DNA from: Podarcis bocagei
Lineage: Eukaryota
Assembly: GCA_964188305.1 (NCBI GenBank)
Contig: OZ076888.1
Direction: 5' to 3' (one strand)
Length of the DNA stretch: 64,000 bases
This document shows, piece after piece, positions 7,646 to 63,994 of this stretch. A model generated the notes under the pieces. It ran no database searches. It was not told the DNA's origin and saw nothing but the letters and a program-made list of their open reading frames with translations. The position numbers and the translations under genes are program-made. How positions within the stretch are numbered: position 1 is the first letter of the stretch; each line of letters starts with the position of its first letter.

Positions 7646-9434
7646 TAGGAACTGACTAATTTTAAGTTTTCACATTTGTAGAGTGCACCAATTTTGAAGC
7701 AAAAAGACAATTTTTGCACAGAAGTGTTTTGTTGAGTCTGAAATTATGGTCTTGTGATCCAGTTGTTTGAGCAGCAATATTATCAATATGTGGATAGCTC
7801 TACCACTTTTTCACTTTCTAATTCCAGTGTGGAAACACCCTCAGCAGGTTCCAGTCTGATTACAGGACTGGAATGGATGAGGGCTAACAAAGTAAAAAAT
7901 AATCCAGGTTTTTCTTAAATATCATGGTTTGGAAAATCTAGTAATTAGAATGTTTAGATTTGACTCTGGATGGGGTCATACTCTTCTTGAAGAGCTAGTT
8001 ACAAAGTCTCCAAGTGACATTAGGTGCCAGGAATGTTTTCACCAGCTTCAGCTGGTTCAGCAGTTGCAGCCTTAACTAACCTGACCAGCCACAGTGATGC
8101 ATGTACTCCCATTTCACTAAATCTCCCTAAGAGAACCATGTTGCTACTTATTTCCATATCATATCTATGTACTTGGTTATCACTGTCTATATGCTAGTCT
8201 GCATGTTTAATCAAAATATTGAAAAAGATAAAAGGTCAAAAAGTGGCAGCATTCCTTTGGCTACTTTACAGAACATTATAGCAAGTAGGCCCCAATTGGT
8301 TAGGTTACTTAGTTACACTGTACTTCAAATTTGTAACATTTTCACATAAATTTACAGCCTGGGTGTTTGTCCCCTTTACTCAACATGAATACTGTACTGG
8401 TACGCAAACAATAATCTTTTACAAAAATGCCTCCGAGCTCCAGCACCCTCTTCCCAGGAGAAAAGTCTCCTGAATGGTACTTCTGTTGACTCAGAAATTG
8501 AGGTTGAGAAACACAGCCATAATAAAATGTTGGTTTCAATTACAGCCACAGCCTCCCCAATAAAAAAAGATTTTGAGAAGCCACAAAACTCATGAAAAGC
8601 ATATTATTAACCAACTCGCAACACATACTCAAAGCGTATTTGCTTATTGCCTTTGGTTGAGGCAGGTGACCTTTTTTGTGGCAGGGTGGTGATGGTGGCA
8701 GCAGCGGCAATTGTGTCATCTTTTGGCAAGAAAAGTAGCTATTCTCTATAGTGGTTCTGGCTAGTACAGTGAAGAGTTGGGTTGAAACCCCTCAGCTGGG
8801 AAACTCACTTGGTGACCATGGGTCAGTCACCCCCCTCTCAGCCTAACCTACCTAATAGGGGAGTTTGAAGGATAAAAGTGTGGGGCAGGGAGCTGGAAGG
8901 ACCATTTGCGCAGAGGGAAAAGCCTCCTGGAGGAAAGGCTAAGTAGATCAAGGTAATAAACAAGTATACTGTACATGAAGTTCTTTAAGCGAGCACAGTC
9001 AGTCAAGGAGTCACAGCCCAGCCACCCCTTTGCCCCAAAAGGACGTCTGTGACGAGGGGGGTGGTGGGAGAGAGTTGCCCCCCCCCCGCTGAATGCCCTG
9101 GGACAAAGGAGGCGCACCTGTACCAGTGGGGAAGGCAAGGCAAAGGGGGGGCGAAGGAGCTTCAATGTGATGATGTAACCGAAAAATACCTCTCCCCACC
9201 CCACCTCACCCACCACCGTCTCCGCACAGGGAGCGGGGGAAATGAGAGTTGTGGAAACACTCGCCCATCTCTCTCTGTTTCCTCCTCCCCAAGGAAGGAA
9301 GGGAGGGTGGGGAGCAAGGAGCAAGAACTGACAGCGTCGAGGTGTGTGCTGACCTTTCCCTCAGCGAGCGTAGCCATCTCGCCGCTCCCCCAGCCGAAGG
9401 CAAAACCCCAACCCCGGCCGGCCCGCGCTCTCAC

Positions 9435-9560
9435 GCAGCGGCGGCGGCGGGCGAGGAGGAGCAGGGCAACGAGCAACTGTCGCGAGCGAGCGCGCCGTTA
9501 GAAGAAGAAGAAGGCGGCAGGGCGAGGGGGTTGGGAGGGGGAGGGAAAGGGGAATTTAAA
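9435..9560 (-). other. CPEB3: Probable CPEB3 non-coding exon 1 (boundaries uncertain)
   Basis: Donor-like TGC|GTGAGA at 9434 on the minus strand inside the CpG island; an alternative donor AAG|GTCAGC lies at ~9353. Confidence 0.4.
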
Positions 9561-9588
9561 TCCCCCCCTCAGGGCCGGCGAAGAGCGG

Positions 9589-9610
9589 GAACTACATCTC
9601 CCATGGTGCC
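9589..9610 (+). promoter_or_regulatory. ZNF143/THAP11 (SBS) motif
   Basis: gaACTACAtcTCCCAtggTGCc fits the consensus ACTACAnnTCCCAnnATGC and lies between the two predicted start regions. Confidence 0.75.
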
Positions 9611-9977
9611 TTGGGCGCGCTCTGCGGTATCTCAGCTCGGAGTGGGCGAGAAGGGAACCAGGAGCAGCGGCGGTTCCTCTGTGAGGTAAGAGGGCCCCGC
9701 GCGTGCGCAATTGCCCTCGCTCCTCCCCGCCCCCTCGCCCGCTCCGAGGCTGCGGCTCTGTTGTGCCTCTCGCTCTCCTTGCCCCCCCCCTCCTTTACCG
9801 GCCTAGGTCGCCGTCTAGTCAAAGGAGCCCGTCACCGCTCGGAAGGAGAGCCTCCTGCCGCTTCCTCCTCCTCCTCCTCCTCCTCTTCCTTGGCGGCAGG
9901 TTCTAGGCCTTGCTTCTCCCGACCGGCTCCTGGCGCCTGTCGTAGCCGAGCCCCCGGGCTCCCCGCACCCGGAGAGG

Positions 9978-10021
9978 ATGTCGGAGCAGACGGGCTTGCT
10001 GATACCGCAGACCATGGACAG
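9978..10021 (+). CDS. MARCHF5: MARCHF5 coding exon 1 (MSEQTGLLIPQTMDR)
   Basis: ATG at 9978, donor AG|gtacgg; phase 2 joins exon 2 to give DRSCWVC. Confidence 0.9.
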
Positions 10022-17804: not shown

Positions 17805-18056
17805 CATGGGTAGGCAAACTAAGGCCCCAGGGGCTGGATCCAGCCCAATCGCCTTCTCAATCCGGCCCGCAGACAGTCCAGGAATCATCGTGTTTTTCCG
17901 TGAGTAGACTGTGTCCTTTTATTTAAAATGCATCTCTGGGTTATTTTTGGGGCATAGGAATTCGTTCATTACTTTTTTAAAAAAGATAGTCCGGTCCACC
18001 ACATGATCTGAGGGATGGTGGACTGGCCTACGGCTGAAAAAGTTTGCTGGCCCATG
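17805..18056. mobile_element. hAT-type non-autonomous transposon
   Basis: TIRs catgggtaggcaaact / agtttgctggcccatg, imperfect 8-bp TSD ctattgag / ctattcat; same family inverted at 33153. Confidence 0.8.
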
Positions 18057-19736
18057 CTATTCATGAATTTATAAAATTCCTAAAAGCCACATCAGCTGGT
18101 GCTGCTTACTTTAAAATATTTAAATCTTTATTTGAATAAACTCTGGAAATCCTGTGCCAAACGGTTTATAACAATGGTAAATAACGCTTGTGCAGGGGTG
18201 TCCCATCAGATCTTGTTGGTTTGCCTCCATTATTCTGAGCCTGGTGGCAGGCACCAAAGTGGTTCAGAACAGTAAGTAGGAATGCAGACCTATTTTCTAT
18301 GCTGTAGTTTGAGCTGAAGAAGTAAAGGCCTTATACCACAAGCAGAAGTCTGAGGTTCATTGGAAATGTATTTGTTTGCAGAAAAATGTGTTTAATTGTT
18401 AAAGCACCCAATTGGTATGCATGCTGCTTCAGAAAATAGATGAATTTCAAGATGAAAGATTTGATCAGTCCACCCTGCCTTCAATTTAAGATTCAATTTT
18501 GATTATCTTCCCAGTAAATTGTCTACTGTTGTTTTTGCTCCTGATACAACTATTTGTGTATCTTTCCTGGATGAGGATGGGTTTTTTGTGTTTGCGTTTC
18601 TGAGATGCCCTGAGAATGCAAATTAGCCATTGAAAGGCAGGATAAGTATTTTGGAAATACGAAATACGATTATTTTCTGCCCTATCATGTGATTATAAAT
18701 ATAGAATAGATTAAAATAGTTTACATTTAATAAGCATTTATTCATTTCTATGCAGGATTTTTTGAACACAATCAGCCAGAAATGTTTCCTGTGCAAATGT
18801 GGGAAAGTTGTAATTAACTGTACAGTTTCTTTGTGGATTTACTTTCCTATTCTGAACTCTAGATCATTCTGCTCGTCCTGAATAACATTTAATAGTTGTA
18901 GTTCTTAGAAATTTTTGTATTTATTTATTTACTGTATTTATTATATTCTGCCCAGTAACAATATTCTTGACGGAAGTAAGAAATGAAGTGAATGAAGGTA
19001 GAATTCTGCTTAGTTGCAGTGCTATAGCTATGTAGATTTGACATGATAAGAATAATGGAATTTTCTCTCTCTCCATATTGGAAAAGGAAATGTATGTCTC
19101 TTTTGCTGTGCATTTTCTGTATAGTGCTGTGATTACAATTGATTGTGGAAAGCAAAGGGCTCTACAGACTTAGATATATTTATAATGCAATCACTCCATT
19201 ATCTGAACAGGAGGGGAAAGATCAATTGCAAGAGGGCAATTTTCCCTTCGCTAGATTACTGTCAAACACATTTATAACTAAAAATAAAATAATCAATCTA
19301 TAAGAGAATTACGTGTATTTCCTTCCTTAATTTTACAATCACATTTTTCTTTATTTGTAAGTGTTGCCAGGATGTAAACATTCCCTATTCAGGAAAGACC
19401 AAAATATCAATATTATATGTAGAATAATTTGTTCATTTGTTGGAATACATTAACTTTATGAATAAAGCAAAAAATTGCAAATGGACCTCAATTACTTCAG
19501 ACACGAATGATGCAAAATATGATTTTAAGAAATGGCATTGGGATTAAGCACACACATTATTATTTTTTAAATCTAGCTATTAGAATATGGTGTTGATGAA
19601 TTTGAGTTAGTAGCACTGCATTTAGGAAATGCCCTTTCTAGGTAAACAAGTTAGCAATAAAATGGTTGGGGGGATTTTATTCTTACGATATTGACAGCTA
19701 AAGCTTTCTGATGTGTCACTTGTGCTTAACTTTCAG

Positions 19737-46402: not shown

Positions 46403-48680
46403 CTACAGAAAGACAGAGGAAAGAAAGATGAGAATCGGTTATTCCAACAAAAGCACAGGAACATCTGCACTGCAGACCAAAGTGTGCAAGAAAGTCTGCT
46501 AGCCTGGAGCAGATATGCCTGACCCAAGCAGGACACTTTATCCAAGTAGGGTGGAATGTCCAAAAAGGAAGAGAAATATGTAGCCTATGCACACTGTGAT
46601 ATGCAGCCAACTGCTGCTGCTTATGCTGTCATATACAATCTCAAGTCACTCTTTTGCAAACATGAAAACACCTGTTCAGTGTTAAACAGAACTGACCTAC
46701 TGGGCCCCTCCCTGGCTGGCTTGTCAATATTTCAGTTATGCCAGTGAGTCCACCCCATTAACTCACCCTGGCTGTTACATAGTGCTTGTGGCCTGCCCAA
46801 GAAAACCTCAAATTCTGCCAAAATCTCTTTCACATACTGTGGAAGGTAAATAAAATTAATGATAAAATAGGTGCACTTACTAGAGATGAGAGCCATTTTT
46901 GAATAATATAGAAACACCAGCAATACTTAAGAGCAATATTAAAATATATGGCAAGAGTAAGCAATTCAAAGTCAATCTAGCTGTCAGTTGCTCAAATCTT
47001 TTAAAAGCTTCATTAACAGAATTAGCTGGGGAGTAAATCAATTGCCTTCCGCAACTGTAATCAAATAATTTAACTACAATGCACTTATATCAATAATTAA
47101 CATTTTCTTAATCGGCCGTAATGACAAGTCTACTGAAAACCATGATGCAATGCACAGTCAAGTTCTATTAGCACTGACTTGAACACAATGAGCATTCATA
47201 ATTAAAAGTAACTAAAGTGGTTCTAGAAAAAGCATCTCCATTCCAAAGTTGCGGGGGGGGGCAGTTAATGGCAAGCTCCTTACACAATTATTTTTTTAAG
47301 AGAGGCTTCAATTCCAAAATATTTTTTAATTTACTTTTTAGATGGCAGGAAGAAGTTTGCCTCACTTCAAAGAAGCTGCCTTATAATCTGTTCAACAGAA
47401 ATTATGCACAGTGTTTCTTTCCCTTTCTTGCATCCCTTCTTGCAGTGTGTGTGTGTACACATGCAAAAGCTGGACAGATGCAGTGATGGGGAATGAATGG
47501 ACTGGGGGTATGGATGGAGGAATATGGTGTGGGGGTGTGTGCATAAGGGGTGGATTGATAGGAGGGAGCATGGCTATCATCTTGGATATCCTCATGACTG
47601 CTCCTGGTGTGGAGACACTGAAAGCACATCTTCTACCTCTTGATTACAGTCTGCAACCATGCATTTTAACTGCACACCGAGCAGCTGTGTTTGACAGACA
47701 GGATAAGGATTCAGAGCTCTCTCCTAATCCACTCTGCTGTTTGAAAACAGGGACCCAAAGGGATGTGCACTGCCCTTATATGCTGCCTCTTTCAGCTGCG
47801 TGTGCATTTGGCTTCCCCCGGTACTTCATGCTCTGCAACCATTGGGGCATGGAAGGAAATACCCTTTTGTATGGTTTCTAGCCTGGGGGAGGGTTCATTA
47901 GTGGGGCTTCTACTGCTGAAGAGTCATGTGCTTCCTTGTCCACCTCCACCTTGTTCTGTTGTACTACTCCCAAAACCAATACTAGCATATATGTAACATG
48001 TATTCTGCTTAGGATATTCAAAGATCCAAAAAGCATGCATGAATTTGTCTGAGTCACTTCAAAACTGTAATGACCACGCCTTTTTAAATAAGCATCAGCT
48101 ATTAAAGGGGGGAAATTAGTTCGTCTGAACTTGAACCAACAGCCCTGGAATATGTTTAACGTATTCATTTTTACCTGCCTTGCAAGCTGCACACATTGCA
48201 CCCTTACTTGTTACTGCCACCTGGTCATACTGCTTTCTTCCACTGGCAGTTTGGAGGGGATAAGCAAAATGTTTTGCAAGTGCGCTGCTGCTTTAGCGCT
48301 GTGCCTTTTGGCATTGTTTAGCTTTCTGTGTTTCTTGCAAGTTGTGGGCATTGTGACTTGATGGTTACACACCTCTCTTAGCATGCACAGATTGCCTCTC
48401 TCTGTGTCCATGTGGCATGTGAGTGTTGTTGCAGTCTTGCCCCTGATTTGGGGAGGTTATTCCAGGGACATTGGGAGCATGACTGCTGTTGATATTGTAA
48501 GAGCGGCCCTATTGGATCAGACCAAAGGCCTAGCTTGTGCAGCATTCTGCTCTCACAATGGCCAAGCCAATGGATATGGGAAGCCCACAAGGAGGACAGG
48601 AAAACAATAACACTATTATCTTTTGTAGTGTTCCTGTTGTATTTTCTCCTCGTCTCTTCCAAGCTGGGCTTGAGTTAGAC

Positions 48681-49183
48681 CAGAGGTTTTCAACCTTTTT
48701 GGGTCCATGGCTCCCTTGACCAACAATATTTTTTCTGTGGTACCCCGTGGGCCTCTTGAGCTCAGCTATGTCATCCCCTGCCTGCAGAGCTAGCAGCCCC
48801 TCACCCCTTTTCAAACACCCTCCCTTGTGGAGTGTTCCCTCAGCCTCCTCTCTTTTCCTCGCTCCTTGGGAATCCTCTGGGTAGCTGCCGCCCCTGGTCT
48901 CTGAGCTGCCCCCCCCAAAAAGAGTTGCCTCCTTCCACTGCCCCACAGGGGCCTGGGAAGCACCCCCTGGCGAGCCCCAGAGACACCATTCACCTGGGGA
49001 GCTCGTAGCCAGGGCTGCTGCAACGAACAGTTGTGCAAGCCTTTGGGAGGCAGAGATGCAAGAGGGTATCAGAGGTGGAAGGGAAGGAAAGAAGGAGAGA
49101 CAGAGGCCAGTGTTGTCCATGGCACCCGTGACCATCATTCAAGCCACCCCAGGGTGCCACGGCCCACTGGTTGAGAACCACCA
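48681..49183. mobile_element. hAT-type non-autonomous transposon
   Basis: Ends cagaggttttcaacc / ggttgagaaccacca; 8-bp TSD agttagac / agttggac. Confidence 0.8.
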
Positions 49184-49377
49184 AGTTGGACTATAGGACT
49201 CCTCTGCTATGTACTTGTATTGCAATAAGCAGCTGCTCAATAAGGCAATATTATTAATTTTGCAAAATCACCAATTACTGTTATACATACAGAGCTGATT
49301 GCAAGGTTCAAACAACCCTATAACTCCTTAAATACAGCATACAAACAGTTCAGGTGCTATACGTAACAATGACAATA

Positions 49378-50260
49378 CAGTGGTGCCTCGCAAGACGAAA
49401 TTAATTCGTTCCGCAAGTTTTTTCTTCTTGCGAGTTTTTCGTCTTGCGATGCACGGTTTCCCATAGGAATGCATTGAAAATCAATTAATGCGTTCCTATG
49501 GAAACCGCCTTCAGACCAGGTCCGGGGACAGTCTGTCCCCCGACCTCTTCTGAAGACTGGGGGGGGGGACAAGGGCTTTTCTTCCCACCCCCAGCATTTT
49601 AAAAAACCCCGGGACAGCGGAGGACTTCTCCGCTGTCCTGGGTGATCTTAAAATGCTGGCGGGTGGCATTTTAAAATCGCCCGGGACAGCGGAGGACTTC
49701 TCCGCTGTCCCGGGAGATGTAAAAGCCCCTGGGAAGGCAGGCAGGGGGGACAAAGACTTTTGCCCCCCGCCCGCCTTCAGAAGAGGTCCTGGACCTCTTC
49801 TGAAGGCGGGCGGGGGGCGAAAGTCTTTGCTCCCCACCGCCTGCCTTCCAAAGCCGTCCGGGACAGCGGAGAAACGTGCTGCCTTTCTCCGCTCTCCCAG
49901 GAAGGCAGGCAGGGGGGAGCAAAGACTTTCGCCCCCCGCCCTGCCTTCAAAAGCCGTCCGCGATAGCGGGAAGCGCTTCCCTGCTATCCCGGACTGCTTT
50001 TAAAATGCTGGCGGTGGGGAGCAAAGCCTTTCGGCCCCCGCCGGCCTTCCTGGACCTCTTCTGAAGGCCGGAGGGGGGGAAAGGCTTTGCTCCCCACCAC
50101 CAGCATTTAAAAGAGGTCCCCGGAGATTTCCCTATGGGCTTTCTTCTTGCGAAGCAAGCCCATAGGGAAATTCGTATTGCGAAGCGCCTCCAAAACAGAA
50201 AACCCTTTCGTCTTGTGGGTTTTCCATCTTGCGAGGCATTCGTCTTGCGAGGTACCACTG
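49378..50260. mobile_element. 883-bp Tigger/pogo-like non-autonomous transposon with GC-rich palindromic interior
   Basis: TIRs CAGTGGTGCCTCGCAAGACGAA / TTCGTCTTGCGAGGTACCACTG, TA on both flanks, CpGs largely intact. Confidence 0.92.
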
Positions 50261-50798
50261 TAGTAGCTGCAGAGATGTCCCCAAGGACAACGTGTGCTTT
50301 GTAGAATCTGGCTAAAGAACAACAACAAAAATAGTTGTTCTTCCCCACCCCCATCTACTTTAAAAAGCTTTTAGAATATAGTGTCACAATTTTAACCCAA
50401 CCAGATATATATAATTGTTCCTGTAAAGAGCTTTGGCTTGTCCAGGCAAAAAAGAAGAGAAAAACTATCATTTACATGTTTGAATTATGCTGACAGTATG
50501 CACAGAATTAAGTTAGCAAGCATTCTGATGAGTGACTAGGGAATAATTGGGGAACAACATTTTTACCCTGGTAAAAAGAATGTGGAATAAAATAAAAAAA
50601 AGAAGAATACTCACAGGCTCTATTGTCATGTTCATAGCACACAGCAACATTTTAACATCTGGTATATGTATGTACTCCATTTAGATAAATGTTGTGATGT
50701 TTATCAAGTTCTCAAACTGTTATTAATATATTCCCTTAAATTTTACACAATTTTACAATCAGAAGCTAAACTAATCAGAAATATTATGATCAGCTTAC

Positions 50799-51515: not shown

Positions 51516-51788
51516 CTCTGTCAAAGTTATATTGCTGGGAAATAATTTCGCCCCAATATTTTGCACACTCAGCAGACAGTTTCTTTGGTTTGTCAAGGCG
51601 ACGAATTGCTAAAGCCTGGATGTGCTTCTGGAAGGCTTCATCAGACATGTCCTCTATACTCTTCTCCATGGTTTTTAAAAAAGCTTCAACTCTGCTCTCC
51701 AAGTAGTGTGGAGGTTTTTCTGACTGGATGATAAATCGTAGTCCTTGGATACCATTTGCCCGCCGTGGACCACTGAACACAATGTAAC
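51516..51788 (-). CDS. IDE: IDE exon 21
   Basis: [38 protein letters not shown]...[14 protein letters not shown]; 273 nt; acceptor tttcaag. Confidence 0.98.
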
Positions 51789-55972: not shown

Positions 55973-57556
55973 CTACAACAGATATTTAGAGGTTTAAAAT
56001 CAATCACATTTTCCATTTCGAAAAACAAGGCCTATATCATCCTAAAATCCAATACATGTCTTAGAAGATGACAAAGAAAATTATAATAATCAACAAAAGT
56101 CAGTGGGAGTTTTCTTCACAAATATTCAGGTTTGGGAAAGTTTCCAGGACAAAATTGCAGTGCTCACTGCGTAGTTTGCCTTGCTTAGAATTCACATGTT
56201 ATTTGACCCAGATTCCAACACAGAAAAGAAAAGAGAAAGGCAGACAGACAGACTATGCTGCACTGCAGTTAGGCTAAACAGACATCCAGCCTCAAAAATA
56301 GTAACAGTCATTCAGGTGGTGGCTGAAGATAAAGCTTAAGCTGTTAACTACATAAAAGAACATGTAGTTTATCATTCCCCATCATCTTGACAGCAATTAT
56401 TTCTGAATGGCAGTTTCAGAGATTGGTGGTTATTCTGAAATTAATTAAACTTTTCATAGATATGTATGGTAGGATTAATGCCTTTAGCTACAGGCACATC
56501 CAAACACCCACTGAAACACAGGTGAGTGTAGATGAATATAAATGGTGAATACAAGTTTAAGTGCCACCAGAGTGGATTGTGGCAATCAACCTTAGAAACT
56601 AAACAATCAGCATAACCTAGATTTCACACCTCGACTCCCTTGTAGAAGTGTACAAAGGGAAAGATGGGAAACTTACATAGGGGTCAGGGGGTGAGGAGAG
56701 AATATTGGAAAGAAATTTCTTCCTCCTGCCTGTCTACAGCCAGGCATACGGATCACTAGTAAATAGATGCTGTGTAAATAAGATCTCTGATATCACTGAT
56801 GGTAAGATAGAGAACATAGGAATGCTGTATTTGGGGTTGTTCTTGAGGCTGCAGCTACCGCAGAATGATTATGCTGGCTGTTACACAGGGAGGCAAGAAG
56901 CGATCATATTGCAACAAATTCTGCACTAACTGATGGTTATGGGATCCAAGTATTTAAAGGAGCACCTCCCCTGATAACTCCCAGCCCAGTCTATGTGGAG
57001 GAAGTCCTGCTTGGGTGCTGCTGGAGGGCGAGGCCCGTGGGGTGGTGAAGTGGAGCAAGGTCTTCTTAATGAGATTAAGAAGACTGAGATTATATTGTCC
57101 GGATGGTGCTGATGTTTCAGTGTCACTTAAAGACAGTGCTGCATCCAATGAAGTTGCCCCATTGCTGCAAGGACAACAGAGGGGGGACAGCAGAGGAGGG
57201 CTCTTGTCTTCATGTCCTGCTTGGGAGCATCTGCAATGGCATATAGATGGCCACTGCTGCAAACAGAATGCTAAACTAGAAGGATGTTTGATTTAATCCA
57301 TTTAGTCTACAACTGGCCCAGAAAATGGGAATGGGGACTAGGTTGGATTGGATAGTGATTTCCCCTTTGCTTCATTCTCTGCTGCTGTCATTAGAATCAC
57401 TCATGAGTTTGTGTTGGCCCAGTTCATTTGTCTGATAACAGACATGGGCTTCTAAGTGGAGCAGCGTGAGCCCTGAGTGAGCTATGTGGCTGCAAACTGG
57501 AGTGAGTGAATTAAATATCTGCTGCTTTCTTCCCAAGACCTATATCCTGCCCTGCC

Positions 57557-58580
57557 CCATGCAATGTTCCTGAACAAAGTGGAGCAAATTGTACGAGTTT
57601 GGCTGAGAGTATAAAACAAATATTACTGTGCTTCCCTTTGTCTTGAAAGAGACTGAGTGTTTACACAGTTCACAGACTTAAAATGACGGAGGTTGAGCTT
57701 GCCAACCTGGAAAAGCACCAACTATGCTTAGTGATCAGATGAGTGGCAGTGCCTGTACCTTTCTCCAATGTTCTGATTTTCCCTAGACCCAAAGAAAATT
57801 GATGAGCTAGAACAGCTGAATCTCTGGACTTTTAAAAGGTAAAGGGAAACAGGACTTGAGAGTGGAAGAAAGGAATGGCATTCAGCATGCTGGGGTTCTG
57901 AAAAGTATTTGGAAATCTCATCTGAAAACAGGAATATTCAATGTACTGACCTCTAGGTGTTTTGCACTACAATTCACATCATTCCTGAACACTGACTATA
58001 TTGGCTGGGGCTAATGGGAGTTAAGAGTCAAACACGGGGGGGGGGGGCACAATATTGGCAACCCCTCTCCATGCAATGTTCCTGAACAAAGTGGAGCAAA
58101 TTGTACGAGTTTGGCTGAGAGTATAAAACAAATATTACTGTGCTTCCCTTTGTCTTGAAAGAGACTGAGTGTTTACACAGTTCACAGACTTAAAATGACG
58201 GAGGTTGAGCTTGCCAACCTGGAAAAGCACCAACTATGCTTAGTGATCAGATGAGTGGCAGTGCCTGTACCTTTCTCCAATGTTCTGATTTTCCCTAGAC
58301 CCAAAGAAAATTGATGAGCTAGAACAGCTGAATCTCTGGACTTTTAAAAGGTAAAGGGAAACAGGACTTGAGAGTGGAAGAAAGGAATGGCATTCAGCAT
58401 GCTGGGGTTCTGAAAAGTATTTGGAAATCTCATCTGAAAACAGGAATATTCAATGTACTGACCTCTAGGTGTTTTGCACTACAATTCACATCATTCCTGA
58501 ACACTGACTATATTGGCTGGGGCTAATGGGAGTTAAGAGTCAAACACGGGGGGGGGGGGCACAATATTGGCAACCCCTCT
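57557..58580. repeat. Perfect 512-bp tandem duplication in IDE intron 17
   Basis: 57557-58068 is repeated at 58069-58580; no difference found by eye, including a G12 run. Confidence 0.95.
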
Positions 58581-60165: not shown

Positions 60166-62069
60166 CTATAGGAAAAGGATATATAAGCTGTTATGTGTTT
60201 GAAATATTCTGTTTTCTATAATTCTAGATTGTCCATCAAAGCAGTAAACAGCAACTTCTTAACACTGGAAACCATTCTCCCTTATTTCACCAGAAATACT
60301 AAGGTTTGCCCTTTACTACATGGAAGTCTATGTGTGATATTATTACTGCGTTACTTTTTCCCAGGGCTTAACATCTTCTATTACAATTACAAAGCAAAAT
60401 TATAGTGGAAAACAAATATTGTTCCATGCTGCAAAGCAATGCTTCAAACGTCAGGTAATAGAAAACGGAATGAAATGTTGTTGCTCTTTCCCAGGATTAA
60501 AATCAGAAAAGCAATATGCTAATTGGAATGAAAAGAGTAGTTTATCATTCTTTTTCCAAATGAAGAATAAAAGTATCCTAGGAACCCAAATCTAGAAAAG
60601 AATATAGGAAAGAAAAACTTCTGTTCCATAGTTAATAAAGCAGAAGAGTCCATTATATACTGATTTTTAAGAAGTAGGGACTTTCAAATGTTTAAGACAT
60701 CAAGATGACAGGTTCATAAAATCATTGCATAACTCGGTTGACCACCATACACACAAGGCTGTATTGAACGCAGTGCCAACTGGGTGCTGCTTGTGCAATG
60801 TGACTTCAGTTTCCTCTCCCTTTCCTGCCCCCCCCCCAACATGCTAAACAGGCTTCTCCACCCTTCTGGAGCTTACTCTGAAGGTGTATAGGGAGCTAGA
60901 GGGGACAGGAGAAGAAGAAAAAAGAGGATTTGCAGGTACTGATGACTAGCAGCATCTGCAAAGCTCCTTGCGCATATAAAGGATAAAACCTTTGTTTTAG
61001 CAACACCTTGCTGCCTGCAAGATGCACCGACTCACCTGTCATTTGTGATGTCTGGTATGTGGGAGACTCTGCCAACCTTGCAAACTAAGCCTCTGGGGCA
61101 GATCCTAATAAGGATCTGGCCTATGAAGTCAAAAGGGCTCCCCAACCCCTGTGCTACATGATGAAAGAAATTAGAATGGACTTGACTCATATTGACTAGA
61201 TCCCAGGTTGCAGTCTGAAAACATAACACCTTGGCAACCTTGCTGGTGCTAAATAGGTCTGATCATATGAGAGGCTGCTGAACAACACTTTGTACACCAC
61301 ACTGAGTTCCATGATGGAAAAAAATGGCAAGCTACAAATGTAAACAAGCAAAAATACTATAAAACTGTGCTGTTTTCCCCCAGCCAATTTTAGCACTGAA
61401 ACCAGTACATTAAAAAGCATGCTTTTTAGCAGCCCCATGTTTTGTCAGATAAAGAAAATGTATGACCTACGCAGAGATTACTGGAGTCTTAAAAGTAAGT
61501 GCAATGTTTTGGGAAAGTTTAGGGAAGAAATAGTCATGTACTAGAGATCACTTTTTAATGTACTCATTTGTTATATAAGGACCCTGTTTCACAAGTCATC
61601 TTGATCCTGAAATGCAGTCTTCTCATACCAATATGCAGTTAGTAATATTTAGTAAATTGCATGTCTGATGAAGGTGGTTCTGGCACACAAAAGCTCATGC
61701 TGCAATAAATGTATTAGTCTTCAAGATGCCCTGCAGTACTTTGGTGGTGGCTGGGGTTTTTTATTTTTTAAGTATACATTAGGATCTAAATAACTGAAAG
61801 CCAGCAGAACTCCATGTTTAACTAAAAACATAGCAACTCCTTCAAGGTTACTAGACTATACAAATGAGTAAGAAATGCAGATCAGTAATGCATCAGCACA
61901 CTTCTCAGTCATAAAAAAACCATTCCAATCATGGCCAAACCATTCAATAAATGGTTATAAAACTGCACAAGTCTCATGCCCTTATGATAGGGATGCAAAG
62001 GAGGACAAAACCAGTAGCCATTTTTTCAAGCAGCACTCAACTCTCACGCCATCTAATTTTTGCTTGTTC

Positions 62070-62233
62070 NNNNNNNNNNNNNNNNNNNNNNNNNNNNNNN
62101 NNNNNNNNNNNNNNNNNNNNNNNNNNNNNNNNNNNNNNNNNNNNNNNNNNNNNNNNNNNNNNNNNNNNNNNNNNNNNNNNNNNNNNNNNNNNNNNNNNNN
62201 NNNNNNNNNNNNNNNNNNNNNNNNNNNNNNNNN
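62070..62233. other. N gap, 164 nt
   Basis: Run of N. Confidence 1.
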
Positions 62234-62234
62234 A
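62090..62234 (-). CDS. IDE: Inferred alternative IDE exon 15b (only its first base is visible; the rest is in the N gap)
   Basis: Strong polypyrimidine tract and acceptor cttttgttttgtttttcttttttgttag|T abut the gap. T would complete the split Ser codon AG|T. The gap fits 145 nt. Confidence 0.6.
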
Positions 62235-62697
62235 CTAACAAAAAAGAAAAACAAAACAAAAGGATGCTTTGATACTTCAAGGAGCGACACGGTAATGGAT
62301 GAAGAAACATGACTGAAGAGTATGTATATGCAGCCTCATAACTAATATTCTCGGGAATGAAACACTGGGAATTTGATTTCTCATTCGGAACTCTAGTGGA
62401 ATGGAGCAGTATCTCAACTCCAATTCGGACTGTAAATTTGAGTTTTAAGTAAAAAAAAAAAATCTTGCAAATATTCTGGTGAATGACATAAAATGAAGTG
62501 CAAAAATTGCTGAATGCGAATGGAAATGTTGAAGACTCCAGAAATTTCAAATTATGAGAAAGTATAGGTAGAAATCAAGGTTGAAAAAGAAACTGAAAAA
62601 AACAGGTTCTCAATTGGAAAAGCCATTGAAAAATTGCTTCCAGCAAATCATTTTTTTCCTTCTGATTAGTGGAAGTAAATTTAAGGCTTTTAAGATT

Positions 62698-62845
62698 NNN
62701 NNNNNNNNNNNNNNNNNNNNNNNNNNNNNNNNNNNNNNNNNNNNNNNNNNNNNNNNNNNNNNNNNNNNNNNNNNNNNNNNNNNNNNNNNNNNNNNNNNNN
62801 NNNNNNNNNNNNNNNNNNNNNNNNNNNNNNNNNNNNNNNNNNNNN
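62698..62845. other. N gap, 148 nt
   Basis: Run of N. Confidence 1.
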
Positions 62846-62862
62846 CCACGTAAGCAAATGGG
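62718..62862 (-). CDS. IDE: IDE exon 15(a); first 17 nt visible, remainder in the N gap
   Basis: cattttcttccag|C CCA TTT GCT TAC GTG G = (S)PFAYV(D), the start of canonical exon 15. The end is inferred from the 145-nt orthologous exon length. Confidence 0.9.

Positions 62863-63051: not shown

Positions 63052-63053
<2 letters not shown>

Positions 63054-63086
<33 letters not shown>
63054..63086. repeat. (CA)n microsatellite
   Basis: Directly visible. Confidence 0.97.
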
Positions 63087-63088
<2 letters not shown>

Positions 63089-63994
63089 ATTACATCTATG
63101 TTAAATCTACTGCGTAAGATTACACAAAACCGTTTTTAGCTCACATTATTCTGAATTTGCTACAAAGACAAATGCTTACAAACAAGTACAAAACATATGT
63201 AAAACACTTAAAATATACAATGAGTTAAAAACCGCCACAGTGGATAAATCTAAAAGCTTGCCAAGTAGGACAGTCTCACACTTAACTTGCTTGTCATCAG
63301 GATTAAACCTCACTGAACACAGCTGCTGGTTTCACAAAATCAGGAAATAGCGCAGTTATAGGTTTGCTACCAAACCACTGGCATTTTCTATATTAGGCAC
63401 AAAAATATCAAAGTTTTGTATTTAGCTATAGCACATAACACTACCCTGATATATTTTTGCAATATCCCAAGGAGGAAGAGTACGCTGCACAGACTTCCAA
63501 AGGTAAAGACAACTCAAAGACTCAAGTCATGTTTCAACAATACTGCTTCGCACCAACATATTAAGAGTGACAAGCCAGATTAAGAGCAGAAGTAATTTGT
63601 GCACAGTATGGTCTAATATCTATTATGGATATATACATATAGCAGTTAAAAATATGAAATCATCAACATCGCCCAAGTAAATTGTTCACAAAGCAACATT
63701 TCTTACTGAAGAATTCTATCATAAGTAAAATAAAAAGTACAACAATATTCAGCATGTTAAAGCAAAATAATAATTATGGGGCAGAATAATGATTCAAAGA
63801 ACAAAACATTTAATTAAAACCATGCATCTCTTTTTGAAGAAAAATCAGAATGTTCTTTTAATAATGTGAAACAAGTGACCCTTTGCACGATGATTTCTGA
63901 CATGCAAACCAACACTATTTATTCAGAAGTTAAGTTTCACTGGGCTCAATCAGACTTGCTCCCAGAAATGTATGCGGCCTCAATATATGTTAAA

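Follow-up and report, generated by a model that had tools for sequence, protein, structure and literature searches.

The intron between the tandem duplicated, mutually exclusive exons 15a and 15b of the insulin-degrading enzyme gene (IDE) harbours a 17-nt antisense element that is complementary to the same coding segment in both exons, and that is found nearly unchanged throughout the bony vertebrates that we compared. Judging from these comparisons and from predicted folds, we hold with moderate confidence that the element serves as a docking site with exonic selectors, governing the choice between 15a and 15b. Insulin and amyloid-beta are both substrates of IDE, and its 15b isoform is reportedly a much poorer catalyst (PMC10129079, PMC8467815); how one exon is chosen over the other is not described in the literature that we searched.

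The IDE locus in the Podarcis bocagei window

The window analysed here is a 64-kb stretch of the Podarcis bocagei genome, and its minus strand carries the 3' half of IDE. This assignment, already made in the first-pass annotation, is supported by the minus-strand stop-to-stop reading frames, which give IDE peptides from the unmasked exon 16 (from ~60165) to the last exon (~45200), and by a 90-aa exon (51517-51786) that matches insulin-degrading enzyme proteins with 90-97% identity, the full-length matches being named so by their sources. The window contains two N runs only, 62698-62845 and 62070-62233, and comparison with all nine relatives described below places these as exons 15a and 15b. 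Given the length of 145 nt that both exons have in the relatives, exon 15a would span 62718-62862 on the minus strand, with 62846-62862 visible and the remainder in the N run: the acceptor AG at 62864-62863 is followed by 17 visible bases (62862-62846), C CCA TTT GCT TAC GTG G, which translate to PFAYV. On the same reckoning exon 15b would span 62090-62234 (minus strand), its first base being visible and the remainder falling in the second N run, which is preceded by a polypyrimidine tract and an AG at 62236-62235, the 15b acceptor. A pair of tandem homologous exons of equal length is thus seen in the relatives, and in the window it is represented by two N runs at matching spacing and by the PFAYV peptide. 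The intervening intron would accordingly occupy 62235-62717 (minus strand; 62698-62717 in the N run), a length of 483 nt that agrees with the initial estimate as long as the exons are 145 nt.

An antisense element upstream of exon 15b

On the plus strand, positions 62311-62336 read actgaaGAGTATGTATATGCAGCc, and the minus-strand pre-mRNA reads GCUGCAUAUACAUACUC at 62334-62318; the antisense copy first noticed there is therefore confirmed. This 17-nt core and one further invariant U (62317) make up the putative docking element, 62317-62334 on the minus strand. With exons taken as 145 nt, the core corresponds to intron nt 384-400 in Podarcis and ends 83 nt before the 15b acceptor. The segment that separates the element from 15b (62235-62316, minus strand) comprises the polypyrimidine tract, the likely branch point and the 3' splice site, as judged from the sequence and from the positions of AG dinucleotides.

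The element is distinctive within this AT-rich region (GC 29%). Even when up to 3 mismatches are allowed, the 17-mer occurs once in the 64-kb window, where 0.08 occurrences are expected. Over 20 kb (window 44-64 kb) it was the sole non-exonic colinear blastn match to two teleost IDE loci, all other colinear matches being exons and the remaining teleost matches a GT-microsatellite. An Rfam search gave no match at the element.

Conservation in nine vertebrate IDE loci

Because the Podarcis exons 15a and 15b lie in N runs, our tests were run on nine vertebrate IDE loci, from Fundulus, Lerista, Phrynosoma, Natator, Engystomops, Lepisosteus, Turdus, Huso and Anguilla, a sample that includes no mammal. 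These were reached from the window's own IDE exon through a full-length IDE protein to its relatives, and from there to the genomic loci; all nine species differ from that of the window, and their intron identity to the window is at most 75%. Exons 15a and 15b are both present in all nine, each 145 nt long with AG and GTAAGT borders, and within a species the two paralogues are 52-58% identical in nucleotide sequence overall. It follows that the exons were duplicated before ray-finned fishes and tetrapods split. Seven database IDE gene models (P0242, P0270, P0271, P0275, P0281, P0303 and P0304) carry the 15a and 15b peptides in tandem; these are probably annotation artefacts, since a transcript with both 145-nt exons is out of frame.

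The 17-mer is identical in Podarcis and in eight of the nine relatives, namely Lerista, Phrynosoma, Natator (a turtle), Turdus (a bird), Lepisosteus, Huso, Anguilla and Fundulus. The element of the frog Engystomops differs by one change, A10 to U, which falls at the sole position that faces a mismatch in both of the duplexes described below (C.A in 15a). Presence in orthologous introns had been named in the first-pass annotation as a test on which the idea could fail, and the element was found, nearly invariant, in all nine of these other vertebrates; the sampled bony vertebrates diverged roughly 430 Myr ago. When the last 170 nt of the intron are aligned across nine sequences, mean column identity is 46% and the only invariant run is GCTGCATAT.CATACTCT. 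Between Podarcis and the turtle, the last ~130 nt are ~85% identical. Orthologous introns range in length from 343 to 1,904 nt, the longest being that of the sturgeon, and the distance from the element to exon 15a ranges with them from 183 to 1,792 nt, whereas its distance to the 15b acceptor stays at 76-143 nt in all nine.

Complementarity to both exons

In each of the nine relatives the element is complementary to its own species' exons, in both cases at exon nt 77-93. The match to 15a is 16/17, with the selector GAGUAUGCAUAUGCAGC, and forms a duplex of 7 bp, a 1x1 C.A mismatch and 9 bp, with predicted energies of -25.3 to -28.7 kcal/mol. The match to 15b is 15/17 (or 14/17), with the selector GAGUAUAC(A/G/C)UAUGCAGC and energies of -21.7 to -26.1 kcal/mol, the helix here consisting of 8 bp (one extra A-U), a 2x2 loop and 9 bp. 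The two pairings share docking nucleotides and register in 9/9 relatives, and the 15a duplex is the more stable of the two in 7/9. Docking nucleotide C11, which never varies, pairs in 15a with the G of an Ala codon and in 15b, in 8/9 species, faces the A of a Thr codon as a mismatch. The complementarity to exon targets that the first-pass annotation proposed is thus borne out for the relatives' own 15a and 15b, while the Podarcis targets lie inside the N runs, where the nine relatives predict the 15a selector at 62786-62770 and the 15b selector at 62158-62142 (minus strand, exon nt 77-93 in each).

We estimated how often such complementarity would arise by chance using the turtle exon 15a. Among 400,000 random 17-mers of intron composition, a single one had a reverse complement that agreed with some stretch of exon 15a in at least 16/17 positions; shuffling the element itself 400,000 times never gave such a match. 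The chance complementarity is thus ~2.5e-6 or less. Ranked by pairing with 15a among the ~1,300 intronic 25-nt windows of each species, the window with the element comes first to third in 8/9 species; within any one species its duplex energy, at z about -3 to -4, does not stand apart, as other windows reach similar values.

Folding predictions point to the same pairings. Partition-function folding of 15a, intron and 15b placed the element in one or the other duplex with a summed probability of 0.92-0.99 in 9/9 species. The favoured partner in the ensemble is 15b in amniotes, the frog and Fundulus, and 15a in the eel, and both pairings are populated in gar and sturgeon. RNAalifold, applied to the contiguous element-to-15b stretch of the relatives, also predicted the element:15b helix. 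The compensatory changes across vertebrates that had been suggested as a check were not found, as no pair was changed on both sides in the RNAalifold alignment of the nine relatives. Since all core pairs are invariant, the support comes from conservation and not from covariation. The variation that exists is confined to mismatch positions or those adjacent to them; one A-U to G.U change occurs in the Fundulus 15b. Competition itself is not proven by these matches, because complementarity to both exons follows automatically from their paralogy.

When we looked for other partners of the element in the 1.5 kb upstream and the 2 kb downstream, the next-best windows differed in place from one species to another. 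Helix extensions suggested by RNAduplex likewise vary among species, and none is seen in the turtle or the bird; among them, an extended 15a duplex (exon CUAGC with intronic GCUGG) occurs in fishes and Lerista and is absent in turtle and bird, placing it outside the conserved core. An origin of the element as an inverted pseudo-exon was rejected, as its likeness to the exon stops at the 17 nt on both sides.

Constraint on the exonic side

A reduction of synonymous variation at the EYxYAA codons had been put forward as a further check, and this is what we observed. Among the nine relatives, 0/5 synonymous sites inside the 15a duplex vary, as against 24/39 elsewhere in the exon; in 15b these figures are 1/5 and 14/25, and the one varying site borders the internal loop. 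The Ala codon within the helix is GCA in 18/18 exons, whereas in the Ala codon that follows, where the helix stops short of the third base, this base can be A, C or T. The two paralogues are 15-16/17 identical in the selector segment, which is, or overlaps, the longest run that they share in 9/9 species. Part of this conservation can be explained without RNA pairing, because the selector peptide is itself conserved and other synonymous-invariant patches exist in both 15a and 15b.

A proposed docking switch

In the mechanism that we propose, the element would pair with either selector, that is with the E-Y-(A/T)-Y-A-A codons in the middle of 15a or of 15b. The same docking nucleotides would be used in both pairings, so that only one could form at a time, and the paired exon would presumably be the silenced one; formation of the duplex in vivo, its effect on splicing and the direction of that effect are what we infer here. 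Pairing with 15b would close a loop of ~155-220 nt (~159 nt in Podarcis) enclosing the branch point, the polypyrimidine tract, the 3' splice site and the first half of 15b. Pairing with 15a would bury the centre of that exon and free 15b, and would become possible first during transcription. Near-equal duplex stabilities together with the order of transcription would then set the 15a/15b ratio and limit joint inclusion. In mouse liver, 15a is ~1000-fold more abundant than 15b (PMC8467815), and the preferential masking of 15b predicted in amniotes fits 15a as the canonical isoform.

The length of the exons bears on how exclusion is achieved. At 145 nt in all nine relatives they are not divisible by 3, and double inclusion or double skipping therefore shifts the frame, so that nonsense-mediated decay (NMD) alone could yield apparent mutual exclusion. 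It is possible that NMD works in parallel with RNA structure, as a backstop that would remove frame-shifted products, and the structure need not be what enforces exclusivity.

Alternative explanations

The pairing with 15b might be the true one by itself, forming a repressor hairpin whose stem hides the 15b 3' splice site and makes 15b a rare form, with the match to 15a a by-product of paralogy. Such a hairpin would account for an element anchored 76-143 nt from 15b at any intron length, for the dominance of the 15b pairing in the predicted ensembles of amniotes, frog and Fundulus and its recovery by RNAalifold, and for the strong repression of 15b in mouse liver (PMC8467815). In an element adapted to 15b alone, however, a U would be expected in place of the invariant C11, which pairs with the G of the 15a Ala codon and mismatches the A of the 15b Thr codon in 8/9 species; in addition, the 15a duplex is the stabler in 7/9 species and the synonymous sites of the 15a selector are fully frozen. 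We consider this explanation rather unlikely. The exon-intron duplex could otherwise recruit ADAR, the element being an editing complementary sequence (ECS) of the kind known from the GRIA2 sites, where an intronic element is complementary to a coding exon; an intronic element in imperfect duplex with an exon is indeed what the nine relatives have. Editing would most plausibly act on the 15b Thr codon (ACA) at its first A, turning Thr into Ala: in 8/9 species this A lies opposite the invariant docking C in an A.C mismatch, and it has a 5' U; two fishes (the eel and one other) encode Ala there in the genome. Yet the helix, at 17-18 bp with an internal loop and unconserved extensions, is short for known ECS (typically >20 bp including flanking helices), the mismatched A of the 15a duplex sits on the intronic side, and the invariant C is equally explained by pairing with 15a. 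A search of the literature for A-to-I editing of IDE came up with no report. Editing as the reason for the element thus appears improbable to us; that the conserved A.C mismatch in the 15b duplex is an ADAR site added to a splicing switch, recoding Thr to Ala, is a more speculative thought.

Other explanations do without the duplex. The element could be bound by a protein as an intronic splicing silencer or enhancer, for example a CA-rich hnRNP site, with its complementarity to the exons a coincidence: its core is CA/UA-rich, and the flanks of alternative exons are commonly conserved, as the 85% identity of lizard and turtle over the last ~130 nt illustrates. Protein sites are, however, short and degenerate, which leaves 17/17 invariance over roughly 430 Myr unexplained; the boundaries of the conserved block coincide with those of the complementarity, and the only variable position is the mismatch. 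Nor is a complementarity with a chance of ~2.5e-6 or less readily taken for coincidence, and a search for Rbfox GCAUG sites at the IDE loci of the nine relatives found none conserved. We think a protein site of this kind quite improbable. A chance match without function might be suspected in so AT-rich a region (GC 29%), all the more as the exon core UGCAUAUGCA is self-palindromic, a caveat raised when the element was first described and a correct one. The flanks GAG... and ...GCAGC nevertheless fix the antisense orientation, and invariance in ten species together with the permutation tests refutes chance for practical purposes, leaving it a negligible probability. Exclusion by steric hindrance or by a distant branch point, which had been thought unlikely from the start, is rejected because, in the window, AG dinucleotides precede the 15b acceptor by ~32, ~40 and ~78 nt, the first of these having been noted early on, and because intron length varies from 343 to 1,904 nt; with AGs at ~32 and ~40 nt, the branch point should lie near the 3' end of the intron, which makes a steric mechanism unlikely.

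Comparison with known systems

The switch that we favour, with one docking element and two exonic selectors, has its closest parallel in ATE1 exons 7a/7b, where competing R1:R3 and R3:R4 pairings operate among elements R1-R5 that are described as intronic (Kalinina et al., NAR 2021; PMC7797038). Both genes have vertebrate tandem duplicated mutually exclusive exons with one in-between element and two homologous partners, and in both the pairings exclude each other and have nearly balanced duplex stabilities. The first-pass annotation had proposed that IDE uses the architecture of Ate1. The competing logic would be shared; the partners are not alike, as R1 and R4, which pair with R3, are described as intronic and not exons (PMC7797038), whereas those in IDE are coding segments within exons. 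We found no second, ultra-long-range module in IDE like the R2:R5 pairing of ATE1. The evidence is also of a different kind, since for ATE1 the mechanism was proven with disruptive mutations, compensatory mutations and antisense oligonucleotides, whereas the IDE case is known from sequence and predicted folds.

Insect Dscam1 exon 6, 14-3-3 zeta and Mhc resemble IDE in having one docking site and several exclusive selectors that choose one exon; there, docking and selector elements are intronic and serve clusters of exons, whereas IDE has two exons only and its selectors are exonic. As its docking element is intronic and both selectors are coding sequence (exon nt 77-93), departing from the intronic docking and selector elements of the characterised competing-structure systems, we class IDE as a variant of these systems. 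According to Hatje et al., competing structures do not usually persist over long spans of evolution (PMC5740500), unlike the IDE element, which is invariant across bony vertebrates.

Other systems share individual features with IDE. The editing complementary sequences of GRIA2 (Q/R and R/G sites) are likewise conserved intronic antisense copies of a coding segment whose imperfect duplexes contain a mismatched A; IDE departs from them in its shorter helix, in having no known editing, and in that one element matches two alternative exons. SCN exons 5a/5b are also ancient duplicated exclusive exons, with RNA elements conserved from human to a cartilaginous fish, and formation of the RNA structure promotes skipping of one exon, the model being an Rbfox2 RNA bridge (PMC12772994). 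Both partners are intronic in SCN (PMC12772994), whereas in IDE the predicted pairing is between exon and intron and is without conserved Rbfox sites. OGDH exons 4a/4b are a vertebrate duplicated exclusive pair with a short intervening intron as well, and exclusion there depends on an extended AG-free zone and on a branch point no more than ~50 nt from the upstream 5' splice site (PMC7969005); IDE differs in having an intron of 343-1904 nt and AGs 32-40 nt from the acceptor.

Novelty and implications

Few mutually exclusive exon pairs of vertebrates are known to have a demonstrated RNA-structure mechanism. A full-text literature search, with supplementary tables and subscription journals outside its scope, found no description of docking and selector elements or of RNA-structure control of the IDE exons, in agreement with the first-pass annotation, which knew of none, and a full-text search for the element's own sequence also returned none. 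What appears to be new here, as far as sequence comparison can tell, is a competing-structure logic with exonic coding selectors and unusually deep conservation. The main genome-wide catalogue of conserved complementary regions left exons out of its search by design (PMC8052449), and exon-intron pairings of this kind would therefore be missed systematically in such catalogues.

In its broadest form, which we put forward tentatively and with somewhat less than even confidence, our proposal is that an RNA switch has existed in IDE for more than 400 million years, with a single intronic docking site whose selectors are at the same time coding sequence of both exons. If this is true, the same codons are constrained by the protein and by RNA structure, and the 15a/15b isoform ratio could be shifted by an oligonucleotide against one 17-mer. 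Conservation across bony vertebrates would run against the view of competing structures as short-lived (PMC5740500). An invariant 17-mer is easy to mutate or block, which makes the 15a/15b question directly testable.

Further structures around exon 15b

Several additional structures were considered around exon 15b. A second helix that would loop out the exon, suggested by a 13-nt inverted repeat in the window (62309-62321 with 61900-61912), was rejected, having no homolog in any relative. A pairing of the pyrimidine tract that follows the element with purine-rich sequence at ~+25 to +60 in the intron after 15b was dismissed as generic purine/pyrimidine complementarity: its mean energy is -26.6 kcal/mol within species and -24.8 kcal/mol across species, and z against shuffles is ~0 except in the eel. 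In that species (Anguilla, 17853-17890 with 18145-18165) the tract after the element is C-rich and strongly complementary to a G-rich block just past 15b (-51 kcal/mol, z -5.6), a species-specific match that would loop out the whole of exon 15b.

Downstream of the 15b donor, by ~25-55 nt, lizards, turtle, sturgeon and eel share a partly conserved block, GGAAGAA...GCTTGAGAGT, for which window positions 62030-62069 read ...GATGGCGTGAGAGTTGAGTGC; this block may be a splicing regulatory element, although its seeming pairing with the tract that follows the docking element was no better than controls. RNAalifold also predicted a local hairpin between the 15b 3' splice site (GUUAG|UCGC) and exon 15b nt ~30-39, at alignment columns 228-271 of the relatives; its window counterpart is 62235-62239 with exon sequence in the N run. 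All pairs of this hairpin are invariant and thus give no evidence either way.

Other features of the window

Within the IDE introns, we observed a direct tandem duplication at 57550-58361, with a period of 512 bp and copies 99% identical over at least 300 nt, in the intron flanked by the exons at ~59.4 and ~55.9 kb. At 48400-50400 lies a GC-rich stretch (51%, compared with ~38% in the neighbouring sequence) that looks like a minisatellite within an IDE intron; a unit rich in proline, glycine and arginine recurs in its reading frames. Intron 14 contains a (GT)n microsatellite at 63053-63095, which explains spurious blastn matches to fish loci and a weak, sub-threshold Rfam match to mir-3149. 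At 666-1616 on the minus strand there is a 317-aa open frame that starts MQDDLLMDKSKAQPQQQRQQQQ and is rich in Q, S and P; it may be the first coding exon of CPEB3. A CpG-island-like stretch with a GC content of 54% lies at 8000-10000, and its location at 8-10 kb would fit a CPEB3/MARCHF5 promoter region.
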